Shown here one piece after another: positions 567 through 51,754 of a stretch of DNA of 64,000 nt (positions within the stretch are counted from its first letter, which is position 1; the number at the start of each line of letters is the position of its first letter). A program made the translations under genes and the position numbers. The stretch is from positions 372,001 to 436,000 of the IMG/VR virus record IMGVR_UViG_3300027996_002186. One strand, 5' to 3'. The notes under the pieces were generated by a model. The model was not told the origin of the DNA. It made no database searches and saw nothing but the letters and a program-made list of their open reading frames with translations.

Positions 567-2066
567 ATGTTGTTAACTATTGAGATAAAAGTAAAAATGA
601 ACAGAGGTAATCTTGGATATTATAATAAAAAAATGAATAGGAAGTTTAAAATTGATGATGAGGTATTAATACCAATAGATAAAATACCAAAGAGTTCGTA
701 TTTTGATGTTGGTGTAATGTGTGATATTTGCTCAATGGAGAAAGAAACAACATATAGAAATTATAATGATTGTTTGAAATATGGATTTTATTCTTGTCAA
801 AAATGCAAACACATCAAAAGGAGAATGACTAATAAGATTAAATATGATGATGAAAATTTCACAAACATAAAGAAGCGAAAAGAAACTATGATATCCAAAC
901 ATGGTTGTTATTTTAACAATAATGAAAAATCCAAAAAAACCGTTAAGGATAAATATGGTGTTTGTAACATTTCACAATTAGATTCAATTAAATGTAAAAA
1001 GAAAGAAACAACATTATTGAATTGGGGAGTTGATAATCCAACTTATATAAAGGATAATAAGTTTATCTATACACAAGATGGTTATATCGAATATAACAAA
1101 GTAGATAAATATCACAAAATTAAATGTGGAGTTGGTCATGAGTTTAATATAACTACAAATTTATTTTATAGTAGATATTATAGAGGATCAACAATATGCA
1201 CTACATGTAATCATATAAACAAACTAACATCCGAGGGTGAGAATGAAGTATATGATCTAATAAATGATAATTATGATGGGAGAATAATTCAATCATATAG
1301 GGATGTTTTGGAGATAGATATTTATCTACCGGATTTGAATATAGGATTTGAATTCAATGGATTATATTGGCACTCAGAAGAACATAAAAATAAAAATTAT
1401 CACCTACACAAAACCGAACATTTCAAGGAAAGGGGTATCAGGATTATACACATATGGGAAGATGATTGGTTGAAAAGGAGAGAAATAATGAAATCAATTA
1501 TTTTAAATAAAGTAAAAAAATCTAATAGAATATTTGCACGAAAATGTAAAGCATGTGAAATTAATAATATAACAGAAGTTAAAGATTTTTTGAATACCAA
1601 CCATATTCAAGGGTTTAATAATAATATCAAAAAATCAATTGGTTTATATTATAATGGTGAATTGGTATCAATAATGTCATTTAATGATATCGAAGGAAGA
1701 AAAAGAATGAAAAATGGGTTTAATATAACTAGATTTTGTAATAAGTTAAACACATCAGTCATAGGAGGAGCTTCAAAAATAATAAGCTTATTTAAATCCA
1801 AGTACAGATATGACTATATGATAAGTTATGCTGATTATTCACTATCAGATGGTGGTCTTTATAAATCAATTGGATTTGAATTGGTTAATAAAAGCTACCC
1901 GGATTATACTTATATAGTTGGTGGAGTTAGAAAACATAAATCAAATTATAAGAAAGATAAATTAGGTATAAAGGGTAAATCAATCACGGAATCAGAGTTC
2001 ATGAAAAATATTGGTATATATAGAATATATGATTGTGGTAAGCTAAAATTTATTATGAATTTTTAA
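567..2066 (+). CDS. Free-standing homing-endonuclease-like protein (Zn-ribbon/KYGV repeats, Vsr/Hef-like nuclease, C-terminal domain)
   Basis: CxxC pairs, KYGVxN-type repeats, EIDIYLP..GFEFNGLYWHSE..IHIWEDDW Vsr-like core, and RFC..GGASK..SYAD..IYDCG tail typical of huge-phage mobile endonucleases. Confidence 0.75.
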   Translation: MLLTIEIKVKMNRGNLGYYNKKMNRKFKIDDEVLIPIDKIPKSSYFDVGVMCDICSMEKETTYRNYNDCLKYGFYSCQKCKHIKRRMTNKIKYDDENFTNIKKRKETMISKHGCYFNNNEKSKKTVKDKYGVCNISQLDSIKCKKKETTLLNWGVDNPTYIKDNKFIYTQDGYIEYNKVDKYHKIKCGVGHEFNITTNLFYSRYYRGSTICTTCNHINKLTSEGENEVYDLINDNYDGRIIQSYRDVLEIDIYLPDLNIGFEFNGLYWHSEEHKNKNYHLHKTEHFKERGIRIIHIWEDDWLKRREIMKSIILNKVKKSNRIFARKCKACEINNITEVKDFLNTNHIQGFNNNIKKSIGLYYNGELVSIMSFNDIEGRKRMKNGFNITRFCNKLNTSVIGGASKIISLFKSKYRYDYMISYADYSLSDGGLYKSIGFELVNKSYPDYTYIVGGVRKHKSNYKKDKLGIKGKSITESEFMKNIGIYRIYDCGKLKFIMNF

Positions 2067-2436
2067 GTATATCCTCGATCTTCTTGTCTCTCTCTAGTAT
2101 TATGAATCTTTGTTCTAGGAATTCTTCTATTTCAACTGGAAGATGAACATTTTGTTTTTTCAAATCATCATAGAATGGCTTACCCATTATATTTATAGAT
2201 GATATTATAATTGCGGTTGTTGAGTCTTGATATCCATCCACTTCCACTTCTTCGCCTAATATAATATATTTAGCTTTGTGTGAATATAATGTAGCACCAC
2301 CGGATGATGCCAATATTCGTCCTGGTGTAGTGGTTGAGTTTGTGTAAATACCAATTCCCCCATAAATACTAGACGTACCTACGAGGTTGATATTAGATGT
2401 ATGTACTTGCTGACTATTTACATTTATGAATCCCAT
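2053..2436 (-). CDS. Hypothetical protein with C-terminal RxxKI tag
   Basis: 127-aa ORF ending ERDKKIEDILKNS. Confidence 0.75.
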   Translation of the reverse strand: MGFINVNSQQVHTSNINLVGTSSIYGGIGIYTNSTTTPGRILASSGGATLYSHKAKYIILGEEVEVDGYQDSTTAIIISSINIMGKPFYDDLKKQNVHLPVEIEEFLEQRFIILERDKKIEDILKNS

Positions 2437-2465
2437 GTAAATTATAACAATTTTAATAAAAAAGT

Positions 2466-4091
2466 TTATTTAACTACTAAGTGTGGTGCTGACCAAATAG
2501 ATTCTGATTTAGCAAAATCAACTATTTTTGTTATATAATCATCTCTTATTTCTTGTGGTAGATTATATAACCAATCTATGAATACTATTGATTGTAGTCT
2601 TGAATTCTCCGCATTTGACTTTTCTCCATCACCAGATAAATCTTGATTGAATATACCGCTGAGGTAATCATTTTCAACCACAAACATCTCACCAACTAAA
2701 TATTCTCTTATTTCAGATTTATCCTTTTTCTTTCTTATAAACTCCTTGATTTGATACAAATTATCTGGCATTAAATGATTTATCATTGATCCAGCTTTAC
2801 CACTAACATACCCACCCTTACTCTTAAGCTCAAGTGATATGTTTGATGTTTGATTACTATCAAATGTTCTACAATCTATACCTGAACCATCTTTCCAATT
2901 ATTAGCAACATCGGCCTCGTTCTCAAATTTCCAGGAAAAGTCTATATTAGCTGTTTTTCTAGAAGGCTTTACCACTTTATCCAGGTTATCAGCTTTTAAC
3001 TTATTATCTATATCTTTATTACCAGAATTAACTATCATTAATTTTGGAGTATTTATCGTTTGCTTAAGTGATACTCCAACTAATCCTTTTCGATGAATAA
3101 CAGACTCACCTAAGAAATCATTAAGATCATCAATATTATCCATATCATAATATGAATTATAATTAGATAAAGATTCATTTCCCTTAAAAACTATCCAGAA
3201 ATCGCTTGGGTTCCATTTAGCCATATTTGAAAGCTCTGGTATATCATAAAAATTATAATCACCTAATAACTCACCAGCCTCGAGTATTATTCCTTTTTTA
3301 TTTTGTATTTCTTCTTTAAATATAAAATGAGCAAATTTATTAATAAGTAGATCTTTACTATTCTTCACTATATAAGAAATATTACTTATATCATCCTCAC
3401 TAAGGTATCCATCTTTAATTCTATTACCGCTTTTATCATATCCCAGTAGAAAATCACATTGATTTTCCATACCTTCCATGATTTTTTTACCTGTTGTAAA
3501 TATATCATATGAGTTATTAATATCATCCATAGATTTATTATTTGATATACTAGCAAATCTTATATCCTTTCTAGTCTCATACCTCATAAGTATTTTACCA
3601 TGATGTGTTTGTATGTTTAACTTAACACCAGCGTTTAACCAAGCTCTAATAGCTAATGTTATTAGAAAGGCAGTTTCTCTAAAATGGTTACCTCTTTTAG
3701 AAGGACCAACACGATCATATTGTCTAACCATATTGGATATTGATCCTCTCTTGGCTACAGCCCAGTCAATGTTAATATCATCAGAATCGGTATGATATAT
3801 CATTAAATCATCATTTGATTCAACTTCTAATTTTAATTTTAAGTCTGAGAAATTTATTTCAGTAACAGTTGAATTTCTTATCCAAATAACCTTTTCATCA
3901 TCACCTGGGATATCCCCCTTTGATAAATCTAATTTTATATCAAAATTATTAATGTTAGATGTTTCTATCTCATTTACTAATTTTTTCATCGCCACTGATT
4001 TCCCCTTTCTAGAAAGGCTATAAGGCATTTTTTTATCACCACTAAGAGTAGCTTCTTTAATAAACCTATTATACCTTAGTATTTTTTTCAT
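2466..4091 (-). CDS. Large hypothetical protein, possible PD-(D/E)xK-like nuclease, N-terminal capsid-targeting-like motif
   Basis: Start moved to ATG 4091 (MKKILRYNRFIKEA), 5 nt after TAATATATA; KWNPSDFW...LVGVSLK motif. Confidence 0.6.
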   Translation of the reverse strand: MKKILRYNRFIKEATLSGDKKMPYSLSRKGKSVAMKKLVNEIETSNINNFDIKLDLSKGDIPGDDEKVIWIRNSTVTEINFSDLKLKLEVESNDDLMIYHTDSDDINIDWAVAKRGSISNMVRQYDRVGPSKRGNHFRETAFLITLAIRAWLNAGVKLNIQTHHGKILMRYETRKDIRFASISNNKSMDDINNSYDIFTTGKKIMEGMENQCDFLLGYDKSGNRIKDGYLSEDDISNISYIVKNSKDLLINKFAHFIFKEEIQNKKGIILEAGELLGDYNFYDIPELSNMAKWNPSDFWIVFKGNESLSNYNSYYDMDNIDDLNDFLGESVIHRKGLVGVSLKQTINTPKLMIVNSGNKDIDNKLKADNLDKVVKPSRKTANIDFSWKFENEADVANNWKDGSGIDCRTFDSNQTSNISLELKSKGGYVSGKAGSMINHLMPDNLYQIKEFIRKKKDKSEIREYLVGEMFVVENDYLSGIFNQDLSGDGEKSNAENSRLQSIVFIDWLYNLPQEIRDDYITKIVDFAKSESIWSAPHLVVK

Positions 4092-4173
4092 AACATTATA
4101 TATTAATATCATGAAATCAGAATCATGTTATCTCACTCATTATTCAAAATGTATATTTCGAATATGTAATAAT

Positions 4174-7166: not shown

Positions 7167-7580
7167 TTACTCACCTTTGATGAAGCTTATTTGATACGAA
7201 GCTTTCCTGTATGTGAATTCAAATTTAATAGGATCCGGATTGCTATTATCGAAACAATTATTCACTTTGAATCCTCTTGAATTCATATATCCGGTTATAT
7301 CTTCTATATTAGAATCGACAAGATATTTTTCGTGGAAATCACCATCTTCAGTTTTATTAATATTTATGTATAACTCTGGTGTTTTTCTTGCTTTAGCCAT
7401 TGTCATTGGTGAGAAACTAGCAATTGTTTCATATCCAATATCATCTAGTTCTGATAATTTATCTTCAATGAATTCAAAACAATCATTCATATCAACAATT
7501 ACATCACCATATACATTATAAAGATTTTTAGGAACTTTATTAAATGATTCAAATATTTTATATGTGTTTATGTGTTTCAT
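7167..7580 (-). CDS. Hypothetical protein, CTS-like N-terminus, dispersed paralog family
   Basis: MKHINTYKIFESF; DKLSELDDIGY. Confidence 0.75.
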   Translation of the reverse strand: MKHINTYKIFESFNKVPKNLYNVYGDVIVDMNDCFEFIEDKLSELDDIGYETIASFSPMTMAKARKTPELYININKTEDGDFHEKYLVDSNIEDITGYMNSRGFKVNNCFDNSNPDPIKFEFTYRKASYQISFIKGE

Positions 7581-8293: not shown

Positions 8294-9637
8294 ATGATGA
8301 CAGAAAAATCGATCTCAGAATTTTTATCTGATGAATACAAAGAGTTTGCGATGTACTCTATTGAGGGGAGGGCGATGCCTTCCGTCATTGATGGATTCAA
8401 ACCAACTCAACGAAAAGTAATACACATATCTAACCAAATATGGAAAACAGGAGGCGAGAAAACACTAAAAGTCTTTCAATTAGCTGGTAAAGTAGCATCT
8501 GATGCTTTTTATCATCATGGTAATACATCACTTGAGAATTCTATTGTAACGATGGCTCAAAAATTCAAGAACAACGCAGCTTTATTAGAAGAAGATGGTC
8601 AATATGGCTCACTTAGATCTCCTCAACCAGGAGCTCCTAGATACATTGGTACTAAATTAAACGAAAACTTTAGATTAATTTATAAAGATTTTGAACTTCT
8701 AAATTATAAAGAGGAAGAAGGAGAAACAATTGAACCAGAATTCTTTTTACCAATAATACCAACTGTTTTATTAAATGGATCATCAGGTATTGCTGTTGGA
8801 TTTGCATCAAACGTATTAAACAGAAACGTAGAACAACTAATAAACTCTTGTGTTAAGGTGTTAGATGGTAAGAAAATAAAGTCTATAAAACCTTCATACG
8901 CTGAATTTACTGGTGAGTTCATACAAGATGAAGAGAATAATAAGAGATGGATAATAAGAGGTGAATTCGAAAGAGTTAACACATCAACAGTAAGGATAAC
9001 TGAATTACCACCATCAATGACTTATGAGAAATATGAAGATCATTTAGATAAAATATCTGATAATAAAGACATTGTTTCTTATGATGATAATTGTAAAGAT
9101 AATATAGATTATACTATTAAATTCAACAGAAGTGTATTAGCCGATTTGGATGATACAAAACTAAGAAAGTTATTAAAATTAGAAGAATCATCTACTGAGA
9201 TATTCTCCACACTCGATGAGTTTGGTAAATTAAAAATATTTGAAACCTGTGAAGAGATAGTTGAATATTTTGTCAATTTCAGACTTACTTATTATCACAC
9301 CAGAAAAGAATTTCTACTAGAAAAGTTAAATAGAGAATTAAAAATACTTTCTAATAGAGGAAGGTTCATAAAAGCTATACTTGATGAAAAGTTAAAGATA
9401 AATAATGTTGCTAAATCCGAAATAATTTCACAAATTGTGGATATGGGGTTAGAACAAATTGATGATTCATATGATTACCTTTTAAGGATGCCTATATATT
9501 CACTAACAAAAGAATTATTTGAAAAATTAAAAATGGATTTCTCTGCTAAGAAAGAAGAGATTCAAATTTTAGAGAATACCGATCCAAAAGATATGTATCG
9601 ATTGGATTTGAGTGATCTAAAAAAGAAATTCAAATAA
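8294..9637 (+). CDS. DNA topoisomerase II medium subunit (T4 gp52-like; GyrA/ParC-type)
   Basis: RAMPSVIDGFKPTQRK, YHHG, GQYGS, GAPRYI (catalytic Tyr), LLNGSSGIAVGFA, ITELP. Confidence 0.97.
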   Translation: MMTEKSISEFLSDEYKEFAMYSIEGRAMPSVIDGFKPTQRKVIHISNQIWKTGGEKTLKVFQLAGKVASDAFYHHGNTSLENSIVTMAQKFKNNAALLEEDGQYGSLRSPQPGAPRYIGTKLNENFRLIYKDFELLNYKEEEGETIEPEFFLPIIPTVLLNGSSGIAVGFASNVLNRNVEQLINSCVKVLDGKKIKSIKPSYAEFTGEFIQDEENNKRWIIRGEFERVNTSTVRITELPPSMTYEKYEDHLDKISDNKDIVSYDDNCKDNIDYTIKFNRSVLADLDDTKLRKLLKLEESSTEIFSTLDEFGKLKIFETCEEIVEYFVNFRLTYYHTRKEFLLEKLNRELKILSNRGRFIKAILDEKLKINNVAKSEIISQIVDMGLEQIDDSYDYLLRMPIYSLTKELFEKLKMDFSAKKEEIQILENTDPKDMYRLDLSDLKKKFK

Positions 9638-9758
9638 TTCAAATATTATTCTTATATTTGTGACAATGATAAAATACATTTCTAAGAATATGAAGTTAGA
9701 TTAATCTAAATCAAAAAATCAGAAAGTAAGTTTACAAATTAAATAAATAATAACACAT

Positions 9759-10388
9759 ATGGGTATTTTTCAAATTATAATGGTATTTTTCAGCGGTATT
9801 ACACTTGGTGGTATAATACATAAATATATTAGTGATTGGTCAGAGAAGAATAAGAAAGATCATTTATTATCAAGCATTACTAAACAATTCAAACAAATAC
9901 AACTGAATATAACAAGAGGAAAATCTTCATTTAAAAACCGAGTGAATAATACGGTTTTTATAAAATCTTCATTAGAAGATCACGGTGATGTTGATATTGT
10001 TTATATAATGGATAGTAATATCAGTAATAGAATATCTATATTTCAAGAATCCAAATGTATCTACACATCAGACTCTATTGAAAAAGATATTATTGATGAA
10101 ATTTCATTCATAATCGAAAAGAGATATAAGAAACAAATTGAAGATGTTGTTGATATATTAGGTTTGAAATTTTATAGACCAGATTTTGAAAAAACGTTTG
10201 ATTTTGAAAAAGCGTTTAAGGACTCCGGTATTGATGAACATGATTCTGATATAGAAAAGATACAAATGGATAATGATTCTCGGTTTGATATCGATGATGT
10301 ATTAGATAAGATTAGTAAAGAAGGAATGGAAAGTCTTTCTGATAGTGAAAAGTTATTTCTAGAAGATTATAGTAGAAATAATGGATAA
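9759..10388 (+). CDS. Membrane-anchored protein with C-terminal DUF6576-like helical module
   Basis: N-terminal TM helix; C-terminus FDIDDVLDKISKEGMESLSDSEKLFL. Confidence 0.7.
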   Translation: MGIFQIIMVFFSGITLGGIIHKYISDWSEKNKKDHLLSSITKQFKQIQLNITRGKSSFKNRVNNTVFIKSSLEDHGDVDIVYIMDSNISNRISIFQESKCIYTSDSIEKDIIDEISFIIEKRYKKQIEDVVDILGLKFYRPDFEKTFDFEKAFKDSGIDEHDSDIEKIQMDNDSRFDIDDVLDKISKEGMESLSDSEKLFLEDYSRNNG

Positions 10389-10734
10389 TATAGAAATAAA
10401 TATTGAACCATGGGTAATAATTTCACAGGTAGGTGAGTATGAACACCACACACTAATAATGATGTTGACACTCATTGTTGAGTTTAATGGTAATTATTTT
10501 TATATCAAAGATGATGATCAAAAACTCAAAGATGTTTCTAATATGCCAAATTATATAAAGGAAGATTGGTTAAACTACAATAAGAAAGAATTGGGTATAT
10601 CTGTTATTAATAAACAGATAAGGAACCTAGAAATGATTTTAGAGAAAAAAAGTCCTTATGATCCAAAAGATGAAGAATCTCTCACACAACTAATATCAAT
10701 ACGTAGAGATTTAATTATCAACGGTATCATTTAA
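10381..10734 (+). CDS. Hypothetical protein, C-terminal tag variant
   Basis: Overlaps upstream stop; ends IRRDLIINGII. Confidence 0.7.
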   Translation: MDNIEINIEPWVIISQVGEYEHHTLIMMLTLIVEFNGNYFYIKDDDQKLKDVSNMPNYIKEDWLNYNKKELGISVINKQIRNLEMILEKKSPYDPKDEESLTQLISIRRDLIINGII

Positions 10735-11178
10735 TTCAAAAGCTATATCAATAGAAGAAATCCAACTAAGTGCTGCTTCTGACATAGATTCAATATATTT
10801 CTTGAAGTTATCAACATTACTTACCCACACAACATTATTTTTCACTAGATAAATATTAGATAACTTACAATTATATCTACTCTCAAAGTGATCAATTGTT
10901 AATTTTAATTCTTCATAAAAATCATTACTAAAATTAAATTCCGAGTTTTTATGTGCTTCTCTAATCATAATTAGATCTATCATCAGACCGCGTTTTATAT
11001 TAGTCATATCTAATTCATTGTGGTCCTCAATAATGTCTTTGCCGCCCATTGATGCTATATTTACAAGATTAACATCGTGAAATCTCATACCAAAATCACA
11101 GACATTACCAAATATATCTTTAATATCATGAAAATTCATATCATCAGTAAAGTCCTCGAATAATTTAATATACTTCAT
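10711..11178 (-). CDS. Hypothetical protein, CTS-like N-terminus, dispersed paralog family
   Basis: MKYIKLFEDF; DIKDIFGNVCDFG; TAATATATA 4 nt upstream. Confidence 0.8.
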   Translation of the reverse strand: MKYIKLFEDFTDDMNFHDIKDIFGNVCDFGMRFHDVNLVNIASMGGKDIIEDHNELDMTNIKRGLMIDLIMIREAHKNSEFNFSNDFYEELKLTIDHFESRYNCKLSNIYLVKNNVVWVSNVDNFKKYIESMSEAALSWISSIDIAFELNDTVDN

Positions 11179-11215
11179 ATTGTATATATTAATATAATTT
11201 CGTATATTTGTTTAA

Positions 11216-11380
11216 ATGGAAAAAATAAGAACTAAAAGAAAAGGACCCACTGATGGTTATACTCCTATTGGAGAAGCATTATGTCAGGGTAAATGTGATA
11301 CAGAAGCTAGAAGAACTAAATCTGGTATTGTAGTAGTTTGTGATGCTTGTAAAAGAGTTGTTATTGATAATAGAGACTAG
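11216..11380 (+). CDS. Small zinc-ribbon-like protein (54 aa), not in ORF track
   Basis: MEKIRTKRKGPTDGYTPIGEALCQGKCDTEARRTKSGIVVVCDACKRVVIDNRD*; 5 nt after TATATTTG; stop abuts next ATG at 11381. Confidence 0.75.
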   Translation: MEKIRTKRKGPTDGYTPIGEALCQGKCDTEARRTKSGIVVVCDACKRVVIDNRD

Positions 11381-11647
11381 ATGAAATGTAGATGTATTGA
11401 ATCGTTTAAGATAAATGATTTTATTTGGGAAGTTGGTCAGGTATATGAATATACAACCAACACACATGAAGAAACTGGATTTATTATTTATTCTGTACAT
11501 AGTGACTCTCTCTACTTAAATCGTATGCAGCTTACTGATAGTTTACCAATGATGGAAGATAAATTCCGAAAAAGATTTGATGATAGAGAAGAATTAAGAG
11601 AAAAAAAACTAAAACAATTATTTAATGAAACTAACGAAAATAGTTAA
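11381..11647 (+). CDS. Hypothetical protein with C-terminal RxxKL tag
   Basis: Ends LREKKLKQLFNE; N-terminus resembles the 15673 and 17614 proteins. Confidence 0.75.
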   Translation: MKCRCIESFKINDFIWEVGQVYEYTTNTHEETGFIIYSVHSDSLYLNRMQLTDSLPMMEDKFRKRFDDREELREKKLKQLFNETNENS

Positions 11648-12191
11648 ACAGATTGCATTATTAAATGTGATAATTTTTATCATATCATATTCTATGGAGT
11701 TTTCATTTTATGATCAATTCGCTCTTTTCCCAAATGGTAGCGAATTATTCCAAACACACCAATATATAACACATATGTTTCTACATGCATCACCAACACA
11801 TATAATTTTTAATATGTTGGCTTTTTTATCCTTTGGATCTAATGTTGAGAATTTCTTTGGTAGTAATAAATTTATAGTATTCTACTTACTATCAGGACTA
11901 GGAGCAGCCTTTCTGCATATAATCATAACCGGGAGTCAATCTCCGGTGGTTGGTGCGTCAGGTGCAATCTTTGGTGTACTATTAATCGCCGCTATTCTTA
12001 ACCCAGAACAGAAATTTTACTTATTCTTTATACTACCAATAAAAGCAAAAATAATTATACCATTAATACTAATATCTGAATTATATTTCGGATTAATGTA
12101 TCCTACTGACCATATAGCACACTTTGCTCATATAGGTGGATCACTAACTGGAGGGTTATTTTACTTAGGAAATAAATTCATAAAAAAATGA
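11625..12191 (+). CDS. Rhomboid family intramembrane serine protease
   Basis: THMFLH..HIIFNM, GASGA (catalytic Ser), AHFAHIGG (catalytic His), about 6 TM helices. Confidence 0.95.
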   Translation: MKLTKIVKQIALLNVIIFIISYSMEFSFYDQFALFPNGSELFQTHQYITHMFLHASPTHIIFNMLAFLSFGSNVENFFGSNKFIVFYLLSGLGAAFLHIIITGSQSPVVGASGAIFGVLLIAAILNPEQKFYLFFILPIKAKIIIPLILISELYFGLMYPTDHIAHFAHIGGSLTGGLFYLGNKFIKK

Positions 12192-12754
12192 AAAACAAAT
12201 TATTAATACTAGACCTAGACGAATGTTTATTTCACTCAGTTTATAAAAGTGAATTTAGTACTCAAAGTTACGACTTCATAAAAAACTCATTTGAGGTTTT
12301 AGATGGTGTGTATAGAACTATGTTTCGGCCTCACTTACTAGAATTCCTAGAATTCGCATTTGAAAACTTTAATGTTGCTGTTTGGACAGCGGCTGGGAAA
12401 GAATATGCTGAATTCATTTTAAACGAAATGGAACTTGATACAACAAAATTAGAATTCTTTTACACTGAGAAAAACTGTACTCCGAAATATGATTATGGTG
12501 AAGGATGGGGAATGGGTCACTATGTATATAAGAAAAACATTACTAAGCTAAGTAAGAAGGGATATGATATGAATAAAGTATTGATGGTTGATGATAAACC
12601 AGAACATATTGATTCGTATGGTAACGTTATTAAAATACCTCCTTTTTATGGAGACACTAATGATACTTACTTATTGAAGTTAAAGGAATACTTAAAGGAA
12701 ATAAAAGATGAACCCAATTATCGAAAAATCGAAAAAAGAGGGTGGTCTAATTAA
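12188..12754 (+). CDS. HAD-superfamily phosphatase, FCP1/NIF-like
   Basis: LILDLDECL, RPHLLEFL, VWTAA, MVDDKP. Confidence 0.9.
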   Translation: MKNKLLILDLDECLFHSVYKSEFSTQSYDFIKNSFEVLDGVYRTMFRPHLLEFLEFAFENFNVAVWTAAGKEYAEFILNEMELDTTKLEFFYTEKNCTPKYDYGEGWGMGHYVYKKNITKLSKKGYDMNKVLMVDDKPEHIDSYGNVIKIPPFYGDTNDTYLLKLKEYLKEIKDEPNYRKIEKRGWSN

Positions 12755-12792
12755 CTCTAATTAGGAAATATTTTTATTATGGATTGTATATT

Positions 12793-12801
12793 TAATATAT
12801 A
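12793..12801 (+). promoter_or_regulatory. Putative late promoter TAATATATA (representative of about 17 copies)
   Basis: 4 nt before ATG 12806. Confidence 0.65.
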
Positions 12802-12805
12802 ATTT

Positions 12806-13210
12806 ATGAATCATTTAAAAAAATATGATGAATTTGTAAACGAGAATTTTTCAGATAGTATTAAGAAAGCTTATAATAGTACTAAACAGAAAGTAAAAGA
12901 CTTTAGTATTAAAGGATTATATAGAGATAGTGTTGATTTTACTAAGAGTTTTTGGGAAGCTACTAAACGTGAAGGTAAAGAAACTAGTCAAGCAATTGGT
13001 ATTTTAAGAAAAATGATTAAAGGACAAGAGGTTAGTGACCAAGAGAAATCATTCTTTAAAAAACAAGCTGGTGATGTTGCTAAGATATTCCCACTTATTG
13101 CAATACAAGGAATACCAGGTGGGTCGGTTGCTATAACTCCATTATTGAAAATTATCGGTAATAAATATAACTTTAATCCATTCCCATCCAAGACTGAGTT
13201 AGGTGAGTAA
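12806..13210 (+). CDS. LETM1-like domain protein with CTS-like N-terminus
   Basis: MNHLKKYDEFVNE; EGKET..EK..FKKQAGDVAK..PLIAIQGIPGG..PFPS. Confidence 0.55.
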   Translation: MNHLKKYDEFVNENFSDSIKKAYNSTKQKVKDFSIKGLYRDSVDFTKSFWEATKREGKETSQAIGILRKMIKGQEVSDQEKSFFKKQAGDVAKIFPLIAIQGIPGGSVAITPLLKIIGNKYNFNPFPSKTELGE

Positions 13211-13301
13211 AATTCTTGACAATATATCCTTATCTTAAATTTATCTTATAATTTTACCAGATAAGTATCAATACTAAATAATATTTCCTTACTTTTATAC
13301 T

Positions 13302-13673
13302 ATGAATCCAAGTAGAATAGAAAAATTTATAGACCAAAAAATAAAAAAGCTTTTAGTTGAAGGTGAATCATACTCTGTTGTGATTAATAATCTTAAAGAT
13401 AGTATTGATAGATTCCAAAAAAGACCGGATTTTATAAGAGTAAGTAAAAAATACTTATTAAAAAACTGGATTCAAATTAATTTCAAAAAAAGATATACAA
13501 CTTATTATGTTATATACTCAACTAAGAGGTTGCATGATATGGAATGGATTATTAAAAATACAAGTAAGTTCCCAACTTATCAAAGATCTAAGATGTTTGG
13601 TCTTGTTAATTTGAAAGATAAGTTATCAGAAAAGAAATTATCCTCGAATATTTTCATTGAGGTTACTGTCTAA
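13302..13673 (+). CDS. Hypothetical basic protein
   Basis: 123-aa ORF after TACTTTTA promoter variant. Confidence 0.65.
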   Translation: MNPSRIEKFIDQKIKKLLVEGESYSVVINNLKDSIDRFQKRPDFIRVSKKYLLKNWIQINFKKRYTTYYVIYSTKRLHDMEWIIKNTSKFPTYQRSKMFGLVNLKDKLSEKKLSSNIFIEVTV

Positions 13674-13712
13674 ATCCTTTGATAATTCAATAGTTTTCCT
13701 TATCTTTATAGT

Positions 13713-13937
13713 ATGAAAGATAGAAAGGAAATATTATGGTCAGTACTCGAAAAATATGATGGTATCTCGAAGTTAAATAAATTTTGTGACTCTATCTCTA
13801 AATTCATACAAGATAAGCAAAATGGTGACGATATAATTAACGTGTACCAATCTTTTGATAATATCGAAAAATCAGATCTTAGAAAAATAAAAAATACAAT
13901 TGGTGTAGATATAGACTATTTTTTATTTTCTATCTAA
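13713..13937 (+). CDS. Hypothetical protein
   Basis: 74-aa ORF after TTTG-N19-TATCTTTA. Confidence 0.65.
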   Translation: MKDRKEILWSVLEKYDGISKLNKFCDSISKFIQDKQNGDDIINVYQSFDNIEKSDLRKIKNTIGVDIDYFLFSI

Positions 13938-14010
13938 ACTTCATGTAACATCATGATACCCTATACTATAATATTACTCGGTTTTTTACTGTTTATCACA
14001 TATGGATTTT

Positions 14011-14844
14011 TTATGGAACACCTCTTCTTCCCGCATGATTTCTTGGTACTGGTGTTGTTTTAATTCTTAATTCTTCTTCTTTTATTTCTATATCCCTAAG
14101 GGCATCTTTAATTTCTTCTTCTTTATACAAAAGTATATCTTCTCTATTCTTAATATCTTTTATATTAATTTCTAAATTCTTTTCTTTTTCTGTTACAATT
14201 TTCAAATCTTTATCAATTTTTGATTTTAACTCTATATACTTTCCATCAATGTCTTTTGATGATTCTAGTATAGTTCTATCAAGGTTTCTTTCCTTTTCGT
14301 TTATATCTTGTAGTTTATCTTGAACATCTAATTCTCTATCTTTTACTTCTTTATATTTATTTCTTAAATCATCTTCTTTTTTATCTAATGATTTGATATC
14401 CTCTTTATATTCATTCTCTCTCTTTTCAACTCTATTGAGTCTAATATCAATTTCTTCTTCTTTACTCTCAATCACTTTTTCTCTACTATTTAATTCAGAT
14501 TCTTTATTTTCTATTTCCTTTAAACGATATTCATCGACTTGTATACCATCATCTTTACTCATAGATGATAATATCATATCCTCCATGAATGGAATCAATT
14601 TATTAGCCAAGGTCTTTGGTGATGGTAACTTATTTATTTTTATAAGTGAGTGTAGTTCTGCCTTCCAATCGACCAATTCAAAAAAGTCAGGGTTGTTGTC
14701 GATTATATCTCTATCTATCTTTACATCTTCTCCTTTTACGTTATAAACGTATTCGTTTAATATAGTACCTAACTTCAATATAAAAATTTTCTTATCAGGG
14801 CTCAAGTATTGAAACTCTTTTATACATTTATGTTTGATTTTCAT
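14011..14844 (-). CDS. Coiled-coil protein
   Basis: Long heptad-like K/E/R-rich repeats (KEEE/RE) in the C-terminal half. Confidence 0.75.
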   Translation of the reverse strand: MKIKHKCIKEFQYLSPDKKIFILKLGTILNEYVYNVKGEDVKIDRDIIDNNPDFFELVDWKAELHSLIKINKLPSPKTLANKLIPFMEDMILSSMSKDDGIQVDEYRLKEIENKESELNSREKVIESKEEEIDIRLNRVEKRENEYKEDIKSLDKKEDDLRNKYKEVKDRELDVQDKLQDINEKERNLDRTILESSKDIDGKYIELKSKIDKDLKIVTEKEKNLEINIKDIKNREDILLYKEEEIKDALRDIEIKEEELRIKTTPVPRNHAGRRGVP

Positions 14845-14881
14845 AATAAATTTTTCAAATTTTAATTATATATAAAAAACC

Positions 14882-14912
14882 TTTGTTTTTCTTTCAATTT
14901 TGACTATATTTG
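14882..14912 (+). promoter_or_regulatory. Bacteroidota housekeeping-sigma promoter (-33/-7); probably also drives the RNase P RNA
   Basis: TTTG(14882)-N19-TATATTTG(14905). Confidence 0.8.
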
Positions 14913-14918
14913 TTAGAT

Positions 14919-15419
14919 ATGACAAAAGAGCAATTAGATAATCTTATTTACTTCACATTTCATTTCCACCAAACTATGGATATAAAAGTGTTTGAGTGTG
15001 ATAGAGATTATCTAATTGAAAAATGGAATAAATATATTGGTGTAAAACCAAAATCAGTAAATTTATCATTTGAGTTTTTTTCTGAAAATATGATTTATTT
15101 TCATTTAAATATAAGAAGATGGTTTACAAAATGGGATAAAAAAGGAGAACACTGGAATGAAATATTACCAGTTATTAACTTCATCAATGAAATTAACCTT
15201 TTAGACCCAGTTGGTAGACGATACCATCTCCATGAGCAGCAATTTACAAAGCAAATGACACCAGAAGATTTGGTTATGTTATTTAATAAACATATTGGTG
15301 ACGAAAAAGAAATTAATAAAAAAGAATACAATTCACTACATCAGTTAATTAGAAACAAAGTAACGAATTGGAAAACTAAATTACAAAGAGAATATAATCT
15401 GATGTTAGTGTTGGATTAA
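14919..15419 (+). CDS. Hypothetical protein, C-terminal tag variant
   Basis: Start moved to ATG 14919 (the track's TTG lies inside the promoter); ends LQREYNLMLVLD. Confidence 0.7.
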   Translation: MTKEQLDNLIYFTFHFHQTMDIKVFECDRDYLIEKWNKYIGVKPKSVNLSFEFFSENMIYFHLNIRRWFTKWDKKGEHWNEILPVINFINEINLLDPVGRRYHLHEQQFTKQMTPEDLVMLFNKHIGDEKEINKKEYNSLHQLIRNKVTNWKTKLQREYNLMLVLD

Positions 15420-15423
15420 AAAG

Positions 15424-15655
15424 ATTAGTATAAGTCAGAGAAGCTATCGCCGGTCCCGAAAGGGTGGAATATACTGGAGAAACCTCGACACTACTGAACC
15501 TAACGTGGGAGACAGTCTTCGGATAGTCGTTTTTACCACGGAAGTAGCGACACGTACAGACCTAGGGTATCGGTTCCCCTTTGATGGTCGGGTTTGTGGC
15601 AATAGATAGATGATAGCATAAAGCAAAATGTTGGGTAAGCTCAACTTATACTAAT
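15424..15655 (+). ncRNA. rnpB: RNase P RNA, minimal bacterial type A-like (catalytic domain only)
   Basis: P1 15424-35/15644-55 (12 bp perfect). P2 GCUAUCG/UGAUAGC. P3 CCGGU/ACUGG. P4 ACC-U-CGACA/UGUUG-GGU with bulged U15485. P5 CUAC/GUAG. P6 GAACC/GGUUC pseudoknot. P7 CGUGG/CCACG. P15 CACG/UGUG, P16 GACC/GGUC, P17 AGGG/CCCU. L15 GGGUU. CR-I GAGAAACCUC, CR-IV AGAUAGAU, CR-V GCAAAAUGUUGGGUA. Confidence 0.93.
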
Positions 15656-15672
15656 TTTTTAATAAAAAATAT

Positions 15673-15879
15673 ATGAAGAAAGGTGATAAATTAATCTGTA
15701 TTAATGAAGTAAATAACTTTTTAAAACAACCTCTTTTTGAAAAGAGTAAAACATATGATGTACTTTATGTAGATAATGAGGATGTTGAAGTTATGGTTTG
15801 TTTAAATCATAACTTATACGCGAATGAATATAATTCCTTCCCATTAGATTGGGTTAATAAAAACTTTAAACATGTATGA
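15673..15879 (+). CDS. Small hypothetical protein (SH3-like MKKGDKLIC start)
   Basis: 68-aa ORF directly after the RNA gene. Confidence 0.7.
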   Translation: MKKGDKLICINEVNNFLKQPLFEKSKTYDVLYVDNEDVEVMVCLNHNLYANEYNSFPLDWVNKNFKHV

Positions 15880-15943
15880 TAGAGAAACTAAATAAGGTTT
15901 AGACAATATAAGATAATATAGGATAAAAAAATATAAGAATAAT

Positions 15944-19451: not shown

Positions 19452-19470
19452 TATAATTATAAATTATAAC

Positions 19471-36599: not shown

Positions 36600-37013
36600 A
36601 TGAAAAGGATTCTTAAATCCAAGACTTATCCAGATGAGGGATCGTTTGCACCAATTATCTATATAATGTATTATGATGAAGACTTTGTTATATATGATAC
36701 TAGGATAAAATTAAGTGCTGAATTTATACAAGAACTTAATTCGATGGGTGTCCCATGTTTTGCCACGCGAGGAGATCAAGAAAGTAAATTACTTAATGAT
36801 ATGATTGAATTTTATCAAGTTCTTGAAAAAAATGAATTAGATATCAATGATATAGATATCAATGAAATTGAAAAAGAATATTTAGATGAGCTTTTAAAAA
36901 TTGAAATTAATTCTGTAAATGCAATCGCTAGATATGATGAAATGTATCTATTGAGATTAGATAACGTTAAACAATTAAGAAGGTTAAAAAATCTTAGTGA
37001 TTTGGGAGTATGA
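36600..37013 (+). CDS. Hypothetical protein, C-terminal tag variant
   Basis: Ends LRRLKNLSDLGV. Confidence 0.7.
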   Translation: MKRILKSKTYPDEGSFAPIIYIMYYDEDFVIYDTRIKLSAEFIQELNSMGVPCFATRGDQESKLLNDMIEFYQVLEKNELDINDIDINEIEKEYLDELLKIEINSVNAIARYDEMYLLRLDNVKQLRRLKNLSDLGV

Positions 37014-37076
37014 ACGTGATAAAAAATAGATGAGGTACTTAGTTAATTAATAAATAATAAAATAACATTTTATTTT

Positions 37077-37289
37077 ATGAAATATAAATCAGGAGACTTA
37101 GTTATAAAAACAACCGGTGGGAATAAAATGTCGGTTTTTAGTATTAGTGACGGAATTTATAAGTGTATTTGGTGTGTTGGTAGTAAAATGAATGAATCAT
37201 TATTTAATGAAGACGAGATAATACCAATAGAAGATTATAAAATACTTGAGGAAAGACAATACAAGATAAGTCAGATATTAGATAACTGA
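37077..37289 (+). CDS. YodC/DUF2158-like small protein with RxxKI tag
   Basis: GDLVIKTTGGNKMSV..CIW..FNEDEI; ends ERQYKISQILDN. Confidence 0.7.
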   Translation: MKYKSGDLVIKTTGGNKMSVFSISDGIYKCIWCVGSKMNESLFNEDEIIPIEDYKILEERQYKISQILDN

Positions 37290-37307
37290 TTCTAACGAAC
37301 TTCCCTA

Positions 37308-37940
37308 TCAATCTCCGTTGAGATGATTATTGAAGTCATCTGAGTTTTTTATCACTTCACCAGAAGATGTTATAAAGGTTCCCCAAGTACAATCCATTTT
37401 AAAATAAACTCTAATCTCTAATGGATCTACCTCTCGTAAGGCTGTATCGAACTTTGTTTGCCAAAAACAAATTTTCATTTCATAACCCATTAATTTCAAT
37501 CTATTCTTAGCTTCAATTATATCATCAATCGAATCTATACCATTTTCATTTAACCAACCACCATGTGTACCATCATAAGTAAAATCAACACCGATTGATA
37601 TAAAAGTATTTTCAAACTCAGCATAGTATTTAGGTACAAAAAATTCAGATATCGATTCTAAATCTTTCTTTGATGGTTCTCTGTGAAATTTATTTCCAGA
37701 TATTGATGGTGAATAATTTATATTTAAATCTCTAGGTGTATCTTTCTTTGGGTTATAAATACCACCAAATTTATAACCATTTATAATACCTTTATCCTCA
37801 AATGATATAAAACAATTTCTAACATCATCAATAACTTTTTTAATCTGAGGTGTATTTTCAGCAGCTAATCTATCTTTCATATCTAAATATGATGGTATCT
37901 CATCATTATTTTCATTGAATTTGCTCCAGCCTTGAATCAT
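37308..37940 (-). CDS. Hypothetical protein, CTS-like N-terminus, dispersed paralog family
   Basis: MIQGWSKFNEN; DVRNCFISFEDKG; KNRLKLMGY. Confidence 0.75.
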   Translation of the reverse strand: MIQGWSKFNENNDEIPSYLDMKDRLAAENTPQIKKVIDDVRNCFISFEDKGIINGYKFGGIYNPKKDTPRDLNINYSPSISGNKFHREPSKKDLESISEFFVPKYYAEFENTFISIGVDFTYDGTHGGWLNENGIDSIDDIIEAKNRLKLMGYEMKICFWQTKFDTALREVDPLEIRVYFKMDCTWGTFITSSGEVIKNSDDFNNHLNGD

Positions 37941-40401: not shown

Positions 40402-40432
40402 TTTGAAAAACGAATAATAATATGTATATTTG
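40402..40432 (+). promoter_or_regulatory. Bacteroidota -33/-7 promoter
   Basis: TTTG-N19-TATATTTG. Confidence 0.8.
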
Positions 40433-40447
40433 TTAAAACGAAAAAAT

Positions 40448-41314
40448 ATGAGAGGATTTAGAAGCTACAATAAAAAAGAATTATTTAACCAGATAGACCA
40501 GTTATCTATTGAAAGGATTAATAATCAGATAATTACCAAGTATGGTGGTCGCGTGATCAAAACTGCTAATGTGTCTAACCGATATGAGATATTTGATATT
40601 GTTAAATATCTTAAAGATAAGATTAATGATATTGAGAATAATTTTACCATCACGAATTACCAACTATCAATTAAGGGTGGTCAACAATACCTTAAGCTAA
40701 TTTCTGATAAGATTGATGTTGGTGGTGTTGAATTTTATAAATCATTTTATATACTAAACTCAAGTGATAAATCAAGAAGATTGAGCTTCAACGTAGGACT
40801 TTACTCAGAAACATCTAAGTTCCATGTAGTTAACAGTTCAAAAAACATTGGTCTAACTAAAAAACATCTTAAAGGTGTTACACAAGCGGCTGAAGAAGCA
40901 ACGCTTGGGTTGAATGATGAAACATTCGATGAACAAATAAAATCATTAAAATCATTAGTCGGTCATAGAATATCATTCTCTAAATTAAGAGAAGTTATTT
41001 TAGGAGACAAAGAAGATATACCAAGAATCAACCACCTTAAATTTGACGCATTTAAGAACTCTGTGAGAACTACTCCATTTACGGGGGTTAGTATAACAAA
41101 AGAACAGAGAACGATGTTATATACACATTCTGAGGATTTATCAGAGGTGCCAAATGATAAAGATTTTTACCTTGATGCTTTTTGGTCATTCCAAGTTTAT
41201 CTTAGAATTTTCAATAAACAAGATTCTCATATAATAAAGAATGAAACTGATAGAATTATGAAAATGACTCAATGGTCAGTTAGAAATGCAGTTTTAGAAT
41301 CATTAGGAATTTAA
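40448..41314 (+). CDS. DUF932/DUF945-like protein, C-terminal tag variant
   Basis: VSNRYEI, ILNSSDKS..FNVGLY, KKHLKG; ends VRNAVLESLGI; start moved to ATG 40448. Confidence 0.55.
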   Translation: MRGFRSYNKKELFNQIDQLSIERINNQIITKYGGRVIKTANVSNRYEIFDIVKYLKDKINDIENNFTITNYQLSIKGGQQYLKLISDKIDVGGVEFYKSFYILNSSDKSRRLSFNVGLYSETSKFHVVNSSKNIGLTKKHLKGVTQAAEEATLGLNDETFDEQIKSLKSLVGHRISFSKLREVILGDKEDIPRINHLKFDAFKNSVRTTPFTGVSITKEQRTMLYTHSEDLSEVPNDKDFYLDAFWSFQVYLRIFNKQDSHIIKNETDRIMKMTQWSVRNAVLESLGI

Positions 41315-49695: not shown

Positions 49696-50076
49696 ATGTA
49701 TATGATTTCAAATAAATCGAAAAAAAGAAAACAACATCAAAAAGAATTAAACTCTCTTAGAAATAGGATGGGTTCTAATATCGTTTGGTTTAATTCTCTT
49801 TCTGAAAAAAACCAGTGTGATATATTATTTCAATGGAAAAAAGAAAAATATCATAATAAATTAACACAACCAGAAAAGGTTATAGATAAACTATTCCTAC
49901 CAAGAAATAGAAAACCACTAAGATATGGATATGGTAATAAAAGGTTCAAATGGGTTGAGCGAATAAATTACCCACCAAATATAAAACATTTCATCAATAG
50001 TGTGAAGTTACGTTACAAACCAAATGTGGTTCAGTTACGTGAATCTGCTATTGACTTACTTTTAAAAAATAAATAA
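49696..50076 (+). CDS. Basic hypothetical protein, C-terminal tag variant
   Basis: Ends LRESAIDLLLKNK; start may be 49702. Confidence 0.7.
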   Translation: MYMISNKSKKRKQHQKELNSLRNRMGSNIVWFNSLSEKNQCDILFQWKKEKYHNKLTQPEKVIDKLFLPRNRKPLRYGYGNKRFKWVERINYPPNIKHFINSVKLRYKPNVVQLRESAIDLLLKNK

Positions 50077-51065: not shown

Positions 51066-51080
51066 AAAATAATAATTAGT

Positions 51081-51446
51081 ATGAAAGTATTTTTAGTAGA
51101 TATAGATGGAACCTGTTGTGATGATATTAGTAATGAAGATTCACACTTATATGCAACTGCAAAAGTTATTGAGGGTTCATTAGAACAAATTAATAAGTGG
51201 TATGATGATGGACATCATATTACATTTTTCACGGCTCGTGAATCAAAAGATAGAGATGTTACAATAAAATGGTTAGATGATAATGGGTTTAAATATAATG
51301 GCCTAATAACAGATAAACCAAGGTGTAAAGGTGAGGATGATGAATATATCTGGATAGATAATCGTAAAGTACGCGGGATAACATATAGTGAAGTGTGGGG
51401 AGATTTGAAGAAAGTGAATAAAGAAATTTTAACATTCGGAGACTAA
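51081..51446 (+). CDS. Small HAD-superfamily phosphatase
   Basis: LVDIDGT, FFTAR, KP, WIDN. Confidence 0.85.
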   Translation: MKVFLVDIDGTCCDDISNEDSHLYATAKVIEGSLEQINKWYDDGHHITFFTARESKDRDVTIKWLDDNGFKYNGLITDKPRCKGEDDEYIWIDNRKVRGITYSEVWGDLKKVNKEILTFGD

Positions 51447-51460
51447 AAATAACCTTTGTA

Positions 51461-51754
51461 ATGAATGAGTGGGTAATAAAAGATATGATAAAACGAGGAA
51501 TAATCTCCTTTAGTAAGGGAGATGAGGTCGTTCTATTGAAGAGAAAAAAAAATGGTTATCCAAAATCTGTTAAGGGAGATGAGGTTTATATAATCACTCA
51601 TATAGAAAATGATAATATAACTATTGCTCAACATTCCACTGATGGTGTTGGTTGGGTAAACCATAATAAAGTAAATAAAATATATCTAATAAATAAATCA
51701 AAATTAAGAGATATCAAAATAAACTCTATACTGAATGAAACAAATCGGTTATAG
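51461..51754 (+). CDS. Hypothetical protein with RxxKI tag
   Basis: Ends LRDIKINSILNE. Confidence 0.7.
   Translation: MNEWVIKDMIKRGIISFSKGDEVVLLKRKKNGYPKSVKGDEVYIITHIENDNITIAQHSTDGVGWVNHNKVNKIYLINKSKLRDIKINSILNETNRL

Follow-up and report, generated by a model that had tools for sequence, protein, structure and literature searches.

A conserved arginine-containing tag at the C-termini of otherwise unrelated megaphage proteins

Short terminal peptides that act on unrelated proteins are known from several systems. C-terminal Clp degrons, such as the ssrA tag and the C-motif 2 of MuA recognised by ClpX, are exposed peptides read by an AAA+ unfoldase working with ClpP. The capsid-targeting sequence of phage T4 is an N-terminal peptide shared by a handful of late internal proteins, which it directs into the capsid and from which it is cleaved by the prohead protease. 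Encapsulin cargo-loading peptides and microcompartment encapsulation peptides are terminal sequences of about 10–20 residues, often amphipathic helices after a linker, that attach unrelated cargo to one protein shell. Replication hubs are bound through short C-terminal tails (the T4 gp45-binding tails, the beta-clamp motif QL[SD]LF, the SSB tail DDDIPF), and in eukaryotes PTS1 and KDEL serve as proteome-wide C-terminal address labels read by one receptor. Here we describe a C-terminal tag carried by about one protein in ten of a giant bacteriophage, for which we found no published description. It was first noticed in a sequence-only reading of a 64,000-nucleotide window, the whole stretch of DNA analysed, in which about 15 small unrelated proteins were said to end in a shared helix motif, inferred to be an address label used by early proteins.

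The observation holds, and it is much larger than was first reported. All 15 strings are found at the C-termini of open reading frames (ORFs) in the window. The positions originally given are gene starts, except that 2053 is the stop end of the minus-strand gene 2053–2436, whilst 14919 and 40448 lie a few codons inside ORFs 14910–15419 and 40430–41314. Enrichment at C-termini over shuffled controls had been named beforehand as a test, and we examined it in the whole 312,709-bp record that holds the window (425 ORF-called genes). The strict pattern R..[KR][IL]..[IL][LIMFVG] matches 40 times, 31 of them within 12 residues of the stop, a 55-fold excess per position. Proteins with the motif in the last 21 residues number 31, compared with 0.62 (maximum 6) in shuffled C-termini, 0.42 in random internal windows and 0 at N-termini. 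Internal matches are close to chance (9 observed, 4.3 ± 2.1 expected), and rejected, non-gene ORFs give 2 of 661. The looser pattern R...[IL]..[IL][LIMFVG] finds 49 tagged proteins, 13 of them in the window, to which 2 looser examples from the original list are added.

Some details of the original description need correction. Position +8, counted from the Arg, is not always hydrophobic; it is G in a variant in which LG[IVL] precedes the stop and N in gene 19024–19419. K at +3 occurs in about 60% of tags. Of the 15 window genes, 14 are on the + strand, but genome-wide the tagged genes follow the local gene orientation on both strands. The claim that the genes lie in units headed by host-type promoters holds only in a modified form: sigma-70-type promoter-like sites are not in excess in 9500–23000 (80 found, 85.5 ± 9.4 in shuffles), although tagged genes are enriched in runs headed by another motif, as described below.

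The only tag of the window on the minus strand, RDKKIEDIL (2065–2091), is followed by KNS and ends gene 2053–2436 (127 residues). All the others are on the + strand. RDLIINGII (10705–10731) ends gene 10381–10734 (117 residues) without a tail, and the orthologue in LR756502 ends RNLIIKKII. REKKLKQLF (11597–11623), followed by NETNENS, ends gene 11381–11647 (88 residues); the orthologue in LR745206 ends REEKLKQLF. REYNLMLVL (15387–15413), followed by D, ends gene 14910–15419 (169 residues) and is a looser variant with V at +7, its orthologues ending REYNLALII, REYNLTLIL and RDYKLSLLV. RDTKLNQLM (17555–17581) has an 11-residue tail in gene 17324–17617 (97 residues), with orthologues ending RDQKIDQIV, RDIKLNQIM and RDIKLNQIT. 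RSSKIEKIL (17818–17844), followed by K, ends gene 17614–17850 (78 residues), with orthologues ending RSDKIDKIL, RNNKLNQIL and RNDKINEIL. RNNRIDDIL (18570–18596), followed by N, ends gene 17847–18602 (251 residues). RNYKLEKLG (18942–18968), an LGI variant followed by I and a TAG stop, ends gene 18657–18974 (105 residues), and its orthologues end RNYKLEKLGI, RDYKLSKLGI and RSYQLEKLGF. The atypical RDAKIDIIN (19381–19407), followed by SVV, ends gene 19024–19419 (131 residues), with an orthologue on a 591-kb contig ending RDIKIDLIND.

The remaining tags lie further along the window. RHFKINKLL (35051–35077), followed by NR, ends gene 34703–35086 (127 residues), and the LR745206 orthologue ends RHFKLNKLLK. 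RLKNLSDLG (36981–37007), an LGV variant followed by V, ends gene 36600–37013 (137 residues). RQYKISQIL (37254–37280), followed by DN, ends gene 37077–37289 (70 residues), whose body is weakly DUF2158-like (residues 6–47) and carries the tag on a C-terminal extension; its orthologues end RQYKIDELL and REDKINNIL. RNAVLESLG (41282–41308), followed by I, ends gene 40430–41314 (294 residues). RESAIDLLL (50038–50064), a weak variant with A at +3 followed by KNK, ends gene 49696–50076 (126 residues). RDIKINSIL (51707–51733), followed by NETNRL and a TAG stop, ends gene 51461–51754 (97 residues).

The constraint acts on the peptide and not on the DNA. Arg codons at the tag are AGA 35, AGG 6, CGT 3, CGA 3 and CGC 2, mirroring genome usage (0.72/0.13/0.07/0.06/0.01), and I and L at the tag use 8 different codons. 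The tagged proteins share no other similarity: there is no BLASTP hit at E ≤ 1e-3 among the 49 bodies, no shared Pfam family, no Pfam or PHROG function and no pattern at flanking positions −6 to −1, so that this is not a paralogous C-terminal domain. The tag is the most conserved part of diverged orthologues. In 20 orthologue pairs with a mean identity of 40%, R0 is kept in 100% and positions +3, +4, +7 and +8 in 70% each, whereas the other positions are kept in 15–45%. In the 251-residue protein, SRNNRIDDILN is nearly invariant in 120 homologues that go down to 36% identity, and in the 294-residue protein V284, R285, N286, L289, E290, L292, G293 and I294 are invariant in 16 homologues. AlphaFold2 models of these two proteins, the only ones modelled, do not pack the tag onto the body. 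In the first the body has a pLDDT of about 90 and the tag 56 falling to 34, with a helix predicted at low confidence at 246–250; in the second a terminal helix at 281–291 follows a low-confidence hinge at 265–278. The linkers are short.

The tag runs through a clade of freshwater megaphages. LR756502 has 116–172 of 993 proteins tagged, with 116 C-terminal matches and 19 internal against 10.2 expected. LR756504 has 53–97 of 951, with 53 C-terminal matches and 8 internal against 9.6 expected, and there 54 of 97 tags end exactly at the stop. The tag is absent from LR756501, which has the same composition and 2 matches; it carries instead a different motif, DPYGEE.W, in 103 copies at N-termini, internally and at C-termini. 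Tagged genes sit in tight arrays. In LR756502 they make up 54 of 177 genes in runs headed by a Bacteroidota-like TAnnTTTG motif, against 40 of 489 in runs headed by the late-type motif that precedes sheath and terminase (OR 4.9, p = 6.5e-12). The structural module is nearly free of tags, and the tag is all but mutually exclusive with an N-terminal label, MKHLK.F..FE, found on late proteins (1 of 80 against 173 of 913, p = 4e-6).

Thus, the analysis itself establishes a peptide-level tag of consensus R-[DEN]-x-K-[IL]-x-x-[IL]-[L/G], followed by 0–11 residues (usually one), on about 10% of the proteins of this megaphage and 10–17% in relatives. The bearers are mostly small ORFans with unrelated bodies, and the tag is essentially confined to C-termini, under strong purifying selection at R0, +3, +4, +7 and +8, unpacked in the structure models and specific to one lineage. 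That it is a short amphipathic helix read in trans by a single receptor, that its bearers belong to a non-late, probably early, expression class, and any binding or degradation through it, are inferences. The earlier interpretation is supported in part: indirect evidence favours a shared label on unrelated proteins, but no particular hub is established. The suggested AAA+/VWA pair is doubtful as a hub. Gene 19471–20742 has no AAA+ or any other Pfam match, and in three relatives it is a longer protein that itself ends in the tag and therefore looks like a client. Gene 20820–22304 encodes a DUF2201 metallopeptidase/VWA-like protein that also exists, at 43% identity, in LR756501. The degron option gains circumstantial support from a phage-encoded Clp system.

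Our best guess, and a tentative one, is that the tag serves degradation by, or delivery to, the phage's own Clp machine. In this view a very conserved ClpC-like unfoldase lacking the usual N-terminal adaptor domain, with two ClpP paralogues, would engage the exposed tag and clear this whole class of early proteins once they have done their work. Two true ClpP genes and a ClpS occur in all four tag-bearing genomes (G001, LR745206, LR756502 and LR756504) and none in LR756501. The unfoldase of the tag-bearing phages has no Clp_N domain, a ClpC-type M-domain and a GVGF ClpP-docking loop, whereas the LR756501 orthologue has Clp_N, no M-domain and no such loop. The unfoldase of the tag-bearing phages is 80–85% identical across more than 100 sequence clusters in which a tagged protein is only about 38% identical. 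In this genome it is encoded directly after a tagged gene and behind a late-type motif. However, the two ClpP genes lie outside the 312-kb record, being present in the near-identical 483-kb contig. The co-occurrence of Clp and tag rests on a single phylogenetic split (LR756501 and Lak against the rest) and may be plain shared ancestry, and Lak-A1 has one ClpP but no tag in the 200 kb sampled. One complex prediction gave no verdict and counts neither way. An invariant Arg with an i, i+3/4, i+7/8 hydrophobic face looks more like a helix docking on a folded surface than like a pore-engaged tail, and tails of up to 11 residues, together with a few high-scoring internal copies, show that a free carboxylate is not required. 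The distribution of DPYGEE.W within proteins is typical of a docking motif, and the phage ClpS keeps the canonical N-degron pocket residues, so it is not an obvious reader of this tag.

Two alternatives are less likely and about equally so. The tag may be a non-proteolytic docking helix through which many small host-takeover proteins are tethered to one conserved hub of the host, a likely Bacteroidota, such as RNA polymerase, ribosome, replisome or a chaperone. The bearers are small, fast-evolving ORFans in early-type arrays, the tag is conserved across phages whose bodies have diverged to 30–40% identity, as expected if the target is a slowly evolving host protein, and its amphipathic pattern and unpacked state fit. 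The other motif in the sister lineage would fit a different host. Against this, 50 to 170 different proteins competing for one host site is hard to reconcile with distinct functions, and strict C-terminal placement is not needed for a docking helix. Alternatively, the tag may be a sorting or encapsulation signal that collects cargo into a phage-built replication factory, compartment shell or virion. The number and diversity of cargoes fit such a signal, the terminal amphipathic helix pattern resembles encapsulation peptides, and the second label on late proteins suggests a code with several destinations. The depletion of tagged genes behind the late-type motif and in the structural module argues against virion packaging, no cleavage signature is visible, and no shell or receptor candidate was found in an analysis that included no search for BMC or encapsulin shell families.

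Self-association through the tag is very unlikely. The hydrophobic spacing (+4, +7, +8) with flanking charges is heptad-like, but nine residues are too few for a stable coiled coil, an invariant Arg in the centre of the hydrophobic face is unusual for self-packing, and indiscriminate hetero-oligomers among more than 50 proteins seem harmful. An action as a nascent peptide in the ribosome tunnel, tuning termination or re-initiation in the packed polycistronic arrays, is slightly less likely still. The motif lies in the last 10–12 residues, usually at a fixed register (a one-residue tail in 21 of 49 tags here, no tail in 54 of 97 in LR756504), and tagged genes are slightly more tightly coupled to the next gene (median gap −1 against 5–10 nt, p about 1e-3). 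However, the register varies from 0 to 11 residues, tags also occur on the last genes of arrays, where the tail encodes a terminator hairpin, and in this genome the coupling difference is not significant (p = 0.31). An artefact of composition (the genome is 29% GC and rich in K, I, N and L, which raises chance matches), of an overlapping DNA element such as a promoter or repeat, or of hidden paralogy is refuted by the shuffles, by LR756501, by the free variation of synonymous codons and by the absence of similarity between the bodies.

A more speculative reading, possible but doubtful, is that megaphages of this clade run a proteome-wide code of short terminal address labels of at least three kinds: the C-terminal tag on non-late proteins, the MKHLK.F..FE label on proteins behind late-type promoters and, in the sister lineage LR756501, DPYGEE.W. 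If each is read by its own receptor, as a degradation, packaging or localisation route, this would be a viral protein-sorting system of a kind not described for bacteriophages.

Compared with C-terminal Clp degrons, the tag agrees in its position at or next to an accessible C-terminus, in lying outside the folded body in the two models and in the presence of an encoded unfoldase and ClpP. It differs in consensus, matching neither the LAA type of ssrA nor the RRKKAI type of MuA, in its helix-like pattern with an invariant Arg, and in being genetically encoded on 10–17% of a viral proteome rather than added co-translationally or present on a few substrates. The T4 capsid-targeting sequence is likewise a short terminal label directing otherwise unrelated phage proteins to one destination, but the tag here is C-terminal, sits on non-late genes and occurs on dozens to more than 150 proteins; the MKHLK label is the closer analogue. 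The sequence is unrelated to encapsulin and microcompartment peptides, no shell partner is known here, and the gene context is probably early rather than structural. The consensus does not match clamp- or SSB-binding tails, the clients are ORFans rather than replication enzymes, and no beta clamp (PF00712) is encoded in the record; one protein in this genome ends in LDFLFD, which looks like the T4-type clamp tail, so that role seems to be taken by another motif. With PTS1 and KDEL, which are tri- or tetrapeptides that need the free carboxylate, the tag shares only an analogy of logic.

The window is the minus strand of positions 56,099–120,098 of a 312,709-bp IMG/VR virus record with 29% GC. 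Although this record is listed as 91% complete, it matches a 483,262-bp contig from about position 179,390 onwards, since probes placed every 5 kb over 180–200 kb and a 21-kb locus at 381–403 kb match exactly, and identical proteins also occur on a 551-kb contig. The record is therefore a fragment of a megaphage, and the completeness estimate is unreliable for this clade. Its nearest named relatives are LR745206 (635 kb) and LR756502 (642 kb), freshwater megaphages that form a sister group to the Lak phages (PMC11165621, PMC9723777). The host is hinted to be a member of the Bacteroidota by a gene at 29277–30248 of the window, which has a G8 domain plus a weak match to the T9SS C-terminal sorting domain (23 bits, below the Pfam cut-off of 27), by SprB/PKD/CHU_C in a relative, and by TAnnTTTG-like upstream motifs.

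We found no evidence for another genetic code in this genome. The coding density is 0.94 under table 11, TAG follows the tags in the normal register, and the tag, by confirming the true C-termini, shows that TAG is a stop in these genes. Some ORFs do end in TAG and continue in frame into a long open stretch of 88, 238 and 176 codons (11216–11380 and 11381–11647 of the window, and the record genes at window-relative coordinates 98713–99369 and −61181 to −60825), but in LR745206 the 11381-type gene stands alone, and the overall coding density and the TAG stops right after tags argue against recoding.

The sequence-only reading had listed 15 proteins in the window ending in a shared helix-like motif, and this observation holds, all 15 C-terminal strings being present. 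We called 425 genes in the record with a simple longest-ORF procedure, so that starts are uncertain whereas stops are not. The pattern R..[KR][IL]..[IL][LIMFVG] matches 40 times, 31 of them within 12 residues of a stop. By comparison, shuffled C-termini give 0.62 proteins, random internal windows 0.42, N-termini 0, and rejected ORFs 2 of 661, and the nine internal matches are close to the number given by shuffled proteins (4.3 ± 2.1). A looser pattern finds 49 tagged proteins, about 11% of the record, and the first 180 kb of the larger contig adds about 14 more. The consensus is R-[DEN]-x-K-[IL]-[polar]-[polar]-[IL]-[L, or G followed by I/V/L], usually followed by one polar residue and the stop, with tails that run from 0 to 11 residues.

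The constraint acts on the peptide rather than on the DNA. The invariant Arg is encoded by AGA 35, AGG 6, CGT 3, CGA 3 and CGC 2 times, which matches genome-wide Arg codon usage, and the I/L positions use eight different codons; this free synonymous variation rules out a promoter, repeat or RNA element overlapping the gene ends as the thing that is conserved. In three genes (the record genes at window-relative coordinates −173246 to −173043, −82508 to −82173 and −26394 to −26092), the residues after the tag are encoded by the ascending stem of a terminator-like hairpin whose loop holds the stop codon, so that the gene end and the terminator overlap, and this explains some of the long tails.

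Hidden paralogy is likewise rejected, as the 49 bodies show no BLASTP similarity to each other. Searches against Pfam and PHROGs gave almost nothing on the function of the tagged proteins, the only hits being a weak DUF2158, a DUF6011 and a weak nucleotidyltransferase. The 251-aa protein at 17847–18602 has more than 150 homologues, down to 36% identity, on contigs of up to 634 kb, and of 120 of these nearly all end in SRNNRIDDIL plus one to three residues. In 20 orthologue pairs between this genome and LR756502, with a mean identity of 40%, R0 is identical in 100% of pairs and positions +3, +4, +7 and +8 in 70% each, whilst positions +1, +2, +5 and +6 are identical in 25, 35, 15 and 45%, respectively. 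Some orthologues differ by the presence or absence of the tag, seven being tagged only in this genome and five only in LR756502, and one LR756502 protein is a body plus tag whilst its LR756501 orthologue stops before the tag.

With a 38-sequence alignment, AlphaFold2 folds the body of the 251-aa protein confidently (pLDDT about 90) but leaves the invariant tag at a pLDDT of 56 falling to 34, with a short helix at 246–250. A Foldseek comparison of this body with the PDB found no matching fold. For the 294-aa protein at 40430–41314 the tag is predicted to be a terminal helix (281–291, pLDDT about 70) after a low-confidence hinge. High conservation without intramolecular packing is the usual signature of a motif read by another molecule.

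Three complete relatives were compared. In LR756502, with 993 genes, 116 of 135 strict matches are C-terminal and the looser pattern finds 172 tagged proteins; these genes are concentrated at the two ends of the record, at 21 of 54 and 37 of 55 genes per 20 kb. In LR756504 (636 kb, 951 genes), 53 of 61 strict matches are C-terminal and 97 proteins are tagged by the looser pattern, and this genome carries a variant, RK.[IK]I.[DE]L[LI], which mostly ends exactly at the stop. The tag is also seen in LR745206, in an 86-kb contig and in a 591-kb contig. LR756501 (735 kb, 1040 genes), which has a similar GC content (32% against 29–31%), is a natural negative control, with 2 of 5 strict matches C-terminal and 8 proteins found by the looser pattern. 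It carries instead a different motif, DPYGEE.W, often preceded by R[IV]FS, in 103 copies, of which 41 are at C-termini, about 20 lie just after an MIKKF..FE N-terminus and the rest are internal (for example at 499642–503452 and 552409–555773); this motif is absent from the tag-bearing genomes. Lak-A1, read with TAG as sense as published, has no tag in the 200 kb sampled.

Tagged proteins are small, with a median of 117 aa against 170 aa for all genes, and their genes sit in tightly packed co-directional arrays; in LR756502, 176 of 196 tagged genes have neither of two upstream motifs within 70 nt. Of these two promoter-like motifs, (T)AATATATA(A) is enriched 12-fold upstream of genes, and TATATTTG-type words, which resemble the Bacteroidota −7 element, 8–9-fold. 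The first motif or a close variant precedes the tail sheath, the large terminase and neighbouring structural genes (in LR756502 it lies about 20–30 nt upstream of the sheath gene, 192321–196172, and the terminase gene, 202525–204663), and we therefore treat it as late-type, which is an inference. In LR756502 tagged genes are 54 of 177 genes in TAnnTTTG-headed runs against 40 of 489 in late-type runs (OR 4.9, p = 6.5e-12), and the structural module at 120–240 kb is almost free of tags. The sequence-only reading had placed nearly all the tagged genes in units headed by host-type promoters, but sigma-70-type sites are not in excess in the window.

A second label, an N-terminal MKH[LI]K.[YF]..[FE], marks 80 proteins of LR756502, where His at residue 3 is enriched 5-fold, and about 14 here, including those at 7167–7580 (−), 12806–13210 (+), 55999–56277 (−) and 63797–64351 (−, running past the window end). 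These genes mostly have their own (T)AATATATA(A) motif upstream, and the label is mutually exclusive with the C-terminal tag but for a single case (1 of 80 against 173 of 913, p = 4e-6). In its position and aromatic spacing it resembles, by analogy only, the T4 capsid-targeting peptide.

The candidates for a reader of the tag were considered in turn. The gene at 19471–20742, taken in the sequence-only reading as an AAA+ protein and one half of a possible hub, has no Pfam match and contains an acidic, coiled-coil-like stretch. Its orthologues in LR745206 (731 aa), LR756502 (622 aa) and the 591-kb contig (618 aa) are longer, with an extra C-terminal domain that itself ends in the tag, whilst the copy here is truncated and untagged. 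For the adjacent DUF2201 peptidase/VWA-like gene, the high conservation (89/85/54/43% identity) only tracks that of topoisomerase (87/76/55/39%), and it is also present in the tag-free LR756501, so that it is at most a possible hub. Neither a beta clamp nor an ABC exporter is present in the record, the exporter being seen only in one relative. A conserved 133-aa protein at 286812–287213 of the record ends in LIKLDFLFD, like the T4-type sliding-clamp-binding tail, and clamp docking may therefore use a different C-terminal motif in this phage.

A phyletic screen for proteins present in tag-bearing genomes and absent from LR756501 gave as its top unknown a 169-aa protein at 83–91% identity, which looks by eye like a PD-(D/E)XK nuclease but had no Pfam match. 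A PrkA (AAA+ PrkA domains) plus DUF444 (YeaH-like) gene pair is present in LR756502 (273831–277142), LR745206 and LR756504 but is absent from the near-identical 483-kb contig of this phage as well as from LR756501. No MecA was found. The screen also brought up a Clp system. Two true ClpP paralogues and a ClpS occur in the 483-kb contig (ClpP at 36628–37386 and 68605–69276, ClpS at 118393–118674 next to the large terminase), LR745206, LR756502 and LR756504, and none occurs in LR756501; Lak-A1 has one ClpP and no ClpS. All these phages have an Hsp100-type ATPase, which in the tag-bearing ones lacks the Clp_N domain, has a ClpC-type M-domain with a UVR motif and has a GVGF loop at the ClpP-docking position, whereas in LR756501 it has Clp_N, no M-domain and no loop. 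In the 312-kb record this ATPase (704 aa, 174646–176760, outside the window) follows a tagged gene directly and has a late-type motif 20 nt upstream, and it is 80–85% identical across more than 100 clusters. A prediction of its complex with the 251-aa tagged protein gave no verdict and is no evidence either way. The phage ClpS keeps the canonical N-degron pocket residues and so is probably an ordinary N-end-rule adaptor.

Thus, the data firmly support a lineage-specific, strictly C-terminal, peptide-level tag under strong selection on a large class of unrelated, mostly small proteins. That the tag is read in trans by one receptor and that its bearers are non-late proteins are reasonable inferences rather than demonstrated facts. 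The interpretation in the sequence-only reading, that of an address label on early proteins such as a docking helix for one hub, an oligomerisation helix or a degron, is partly supported, as no particular hub is established. The most likely specific mechanism, put forward tentatively and with less than even confidence, is a degradation or delivery tag for the phage's own N-domain-less ClpC-like/ClpP machine, which would give timed clearance of early proteins. This fits the strict terminal placement, the expression class and the co-occurrence. However, the co-occurrence is one phylogenetic contrast, the consensus is unlike known degrons, and the helix-like pattern would equally fit docking on a folded hub. 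Docking on a host hub and sorting into a phage-built structure are both unlikely, though neither more so than the other; self-association is less likely still, a nascent-peptide effect on termination or re-initiation slightly less likely again, and something other than any of these remains possible. An artefact can be all but dismissed.

Megaphages carry hundreds of small genes with no recognisable function. A shared, strongly selected tag sorts a tenth or more of them into one functional class and gives a direct experimental handle, as a nine-residue peptide can be used to fish for its receptor. If the tag is a degron for a phage-encoded Clp machine, it would be, to our knowledge, the first case in which a virus programs the turnover of a whole temporal class of its own proteins; if it is a docking or sorting signal, it points to an unknown hub or compartment in the largest known phages. 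For annotation, the tag also marks gene class and separates lineages. Among the literature searched, we found no description of this tag, of DPYGEE.W, or of terminal labels or motifs of this sort in megaphages. Terminal degrons and sorting peptides are known kinds of signal, and the capsid-targeting peptide of phage T4 is a small-scale precedent, but a label carried by 10–17% of a phage proteome, with a different label in a sister lineage and a second, all but exclusive N-terminal label, is new in scale and context.
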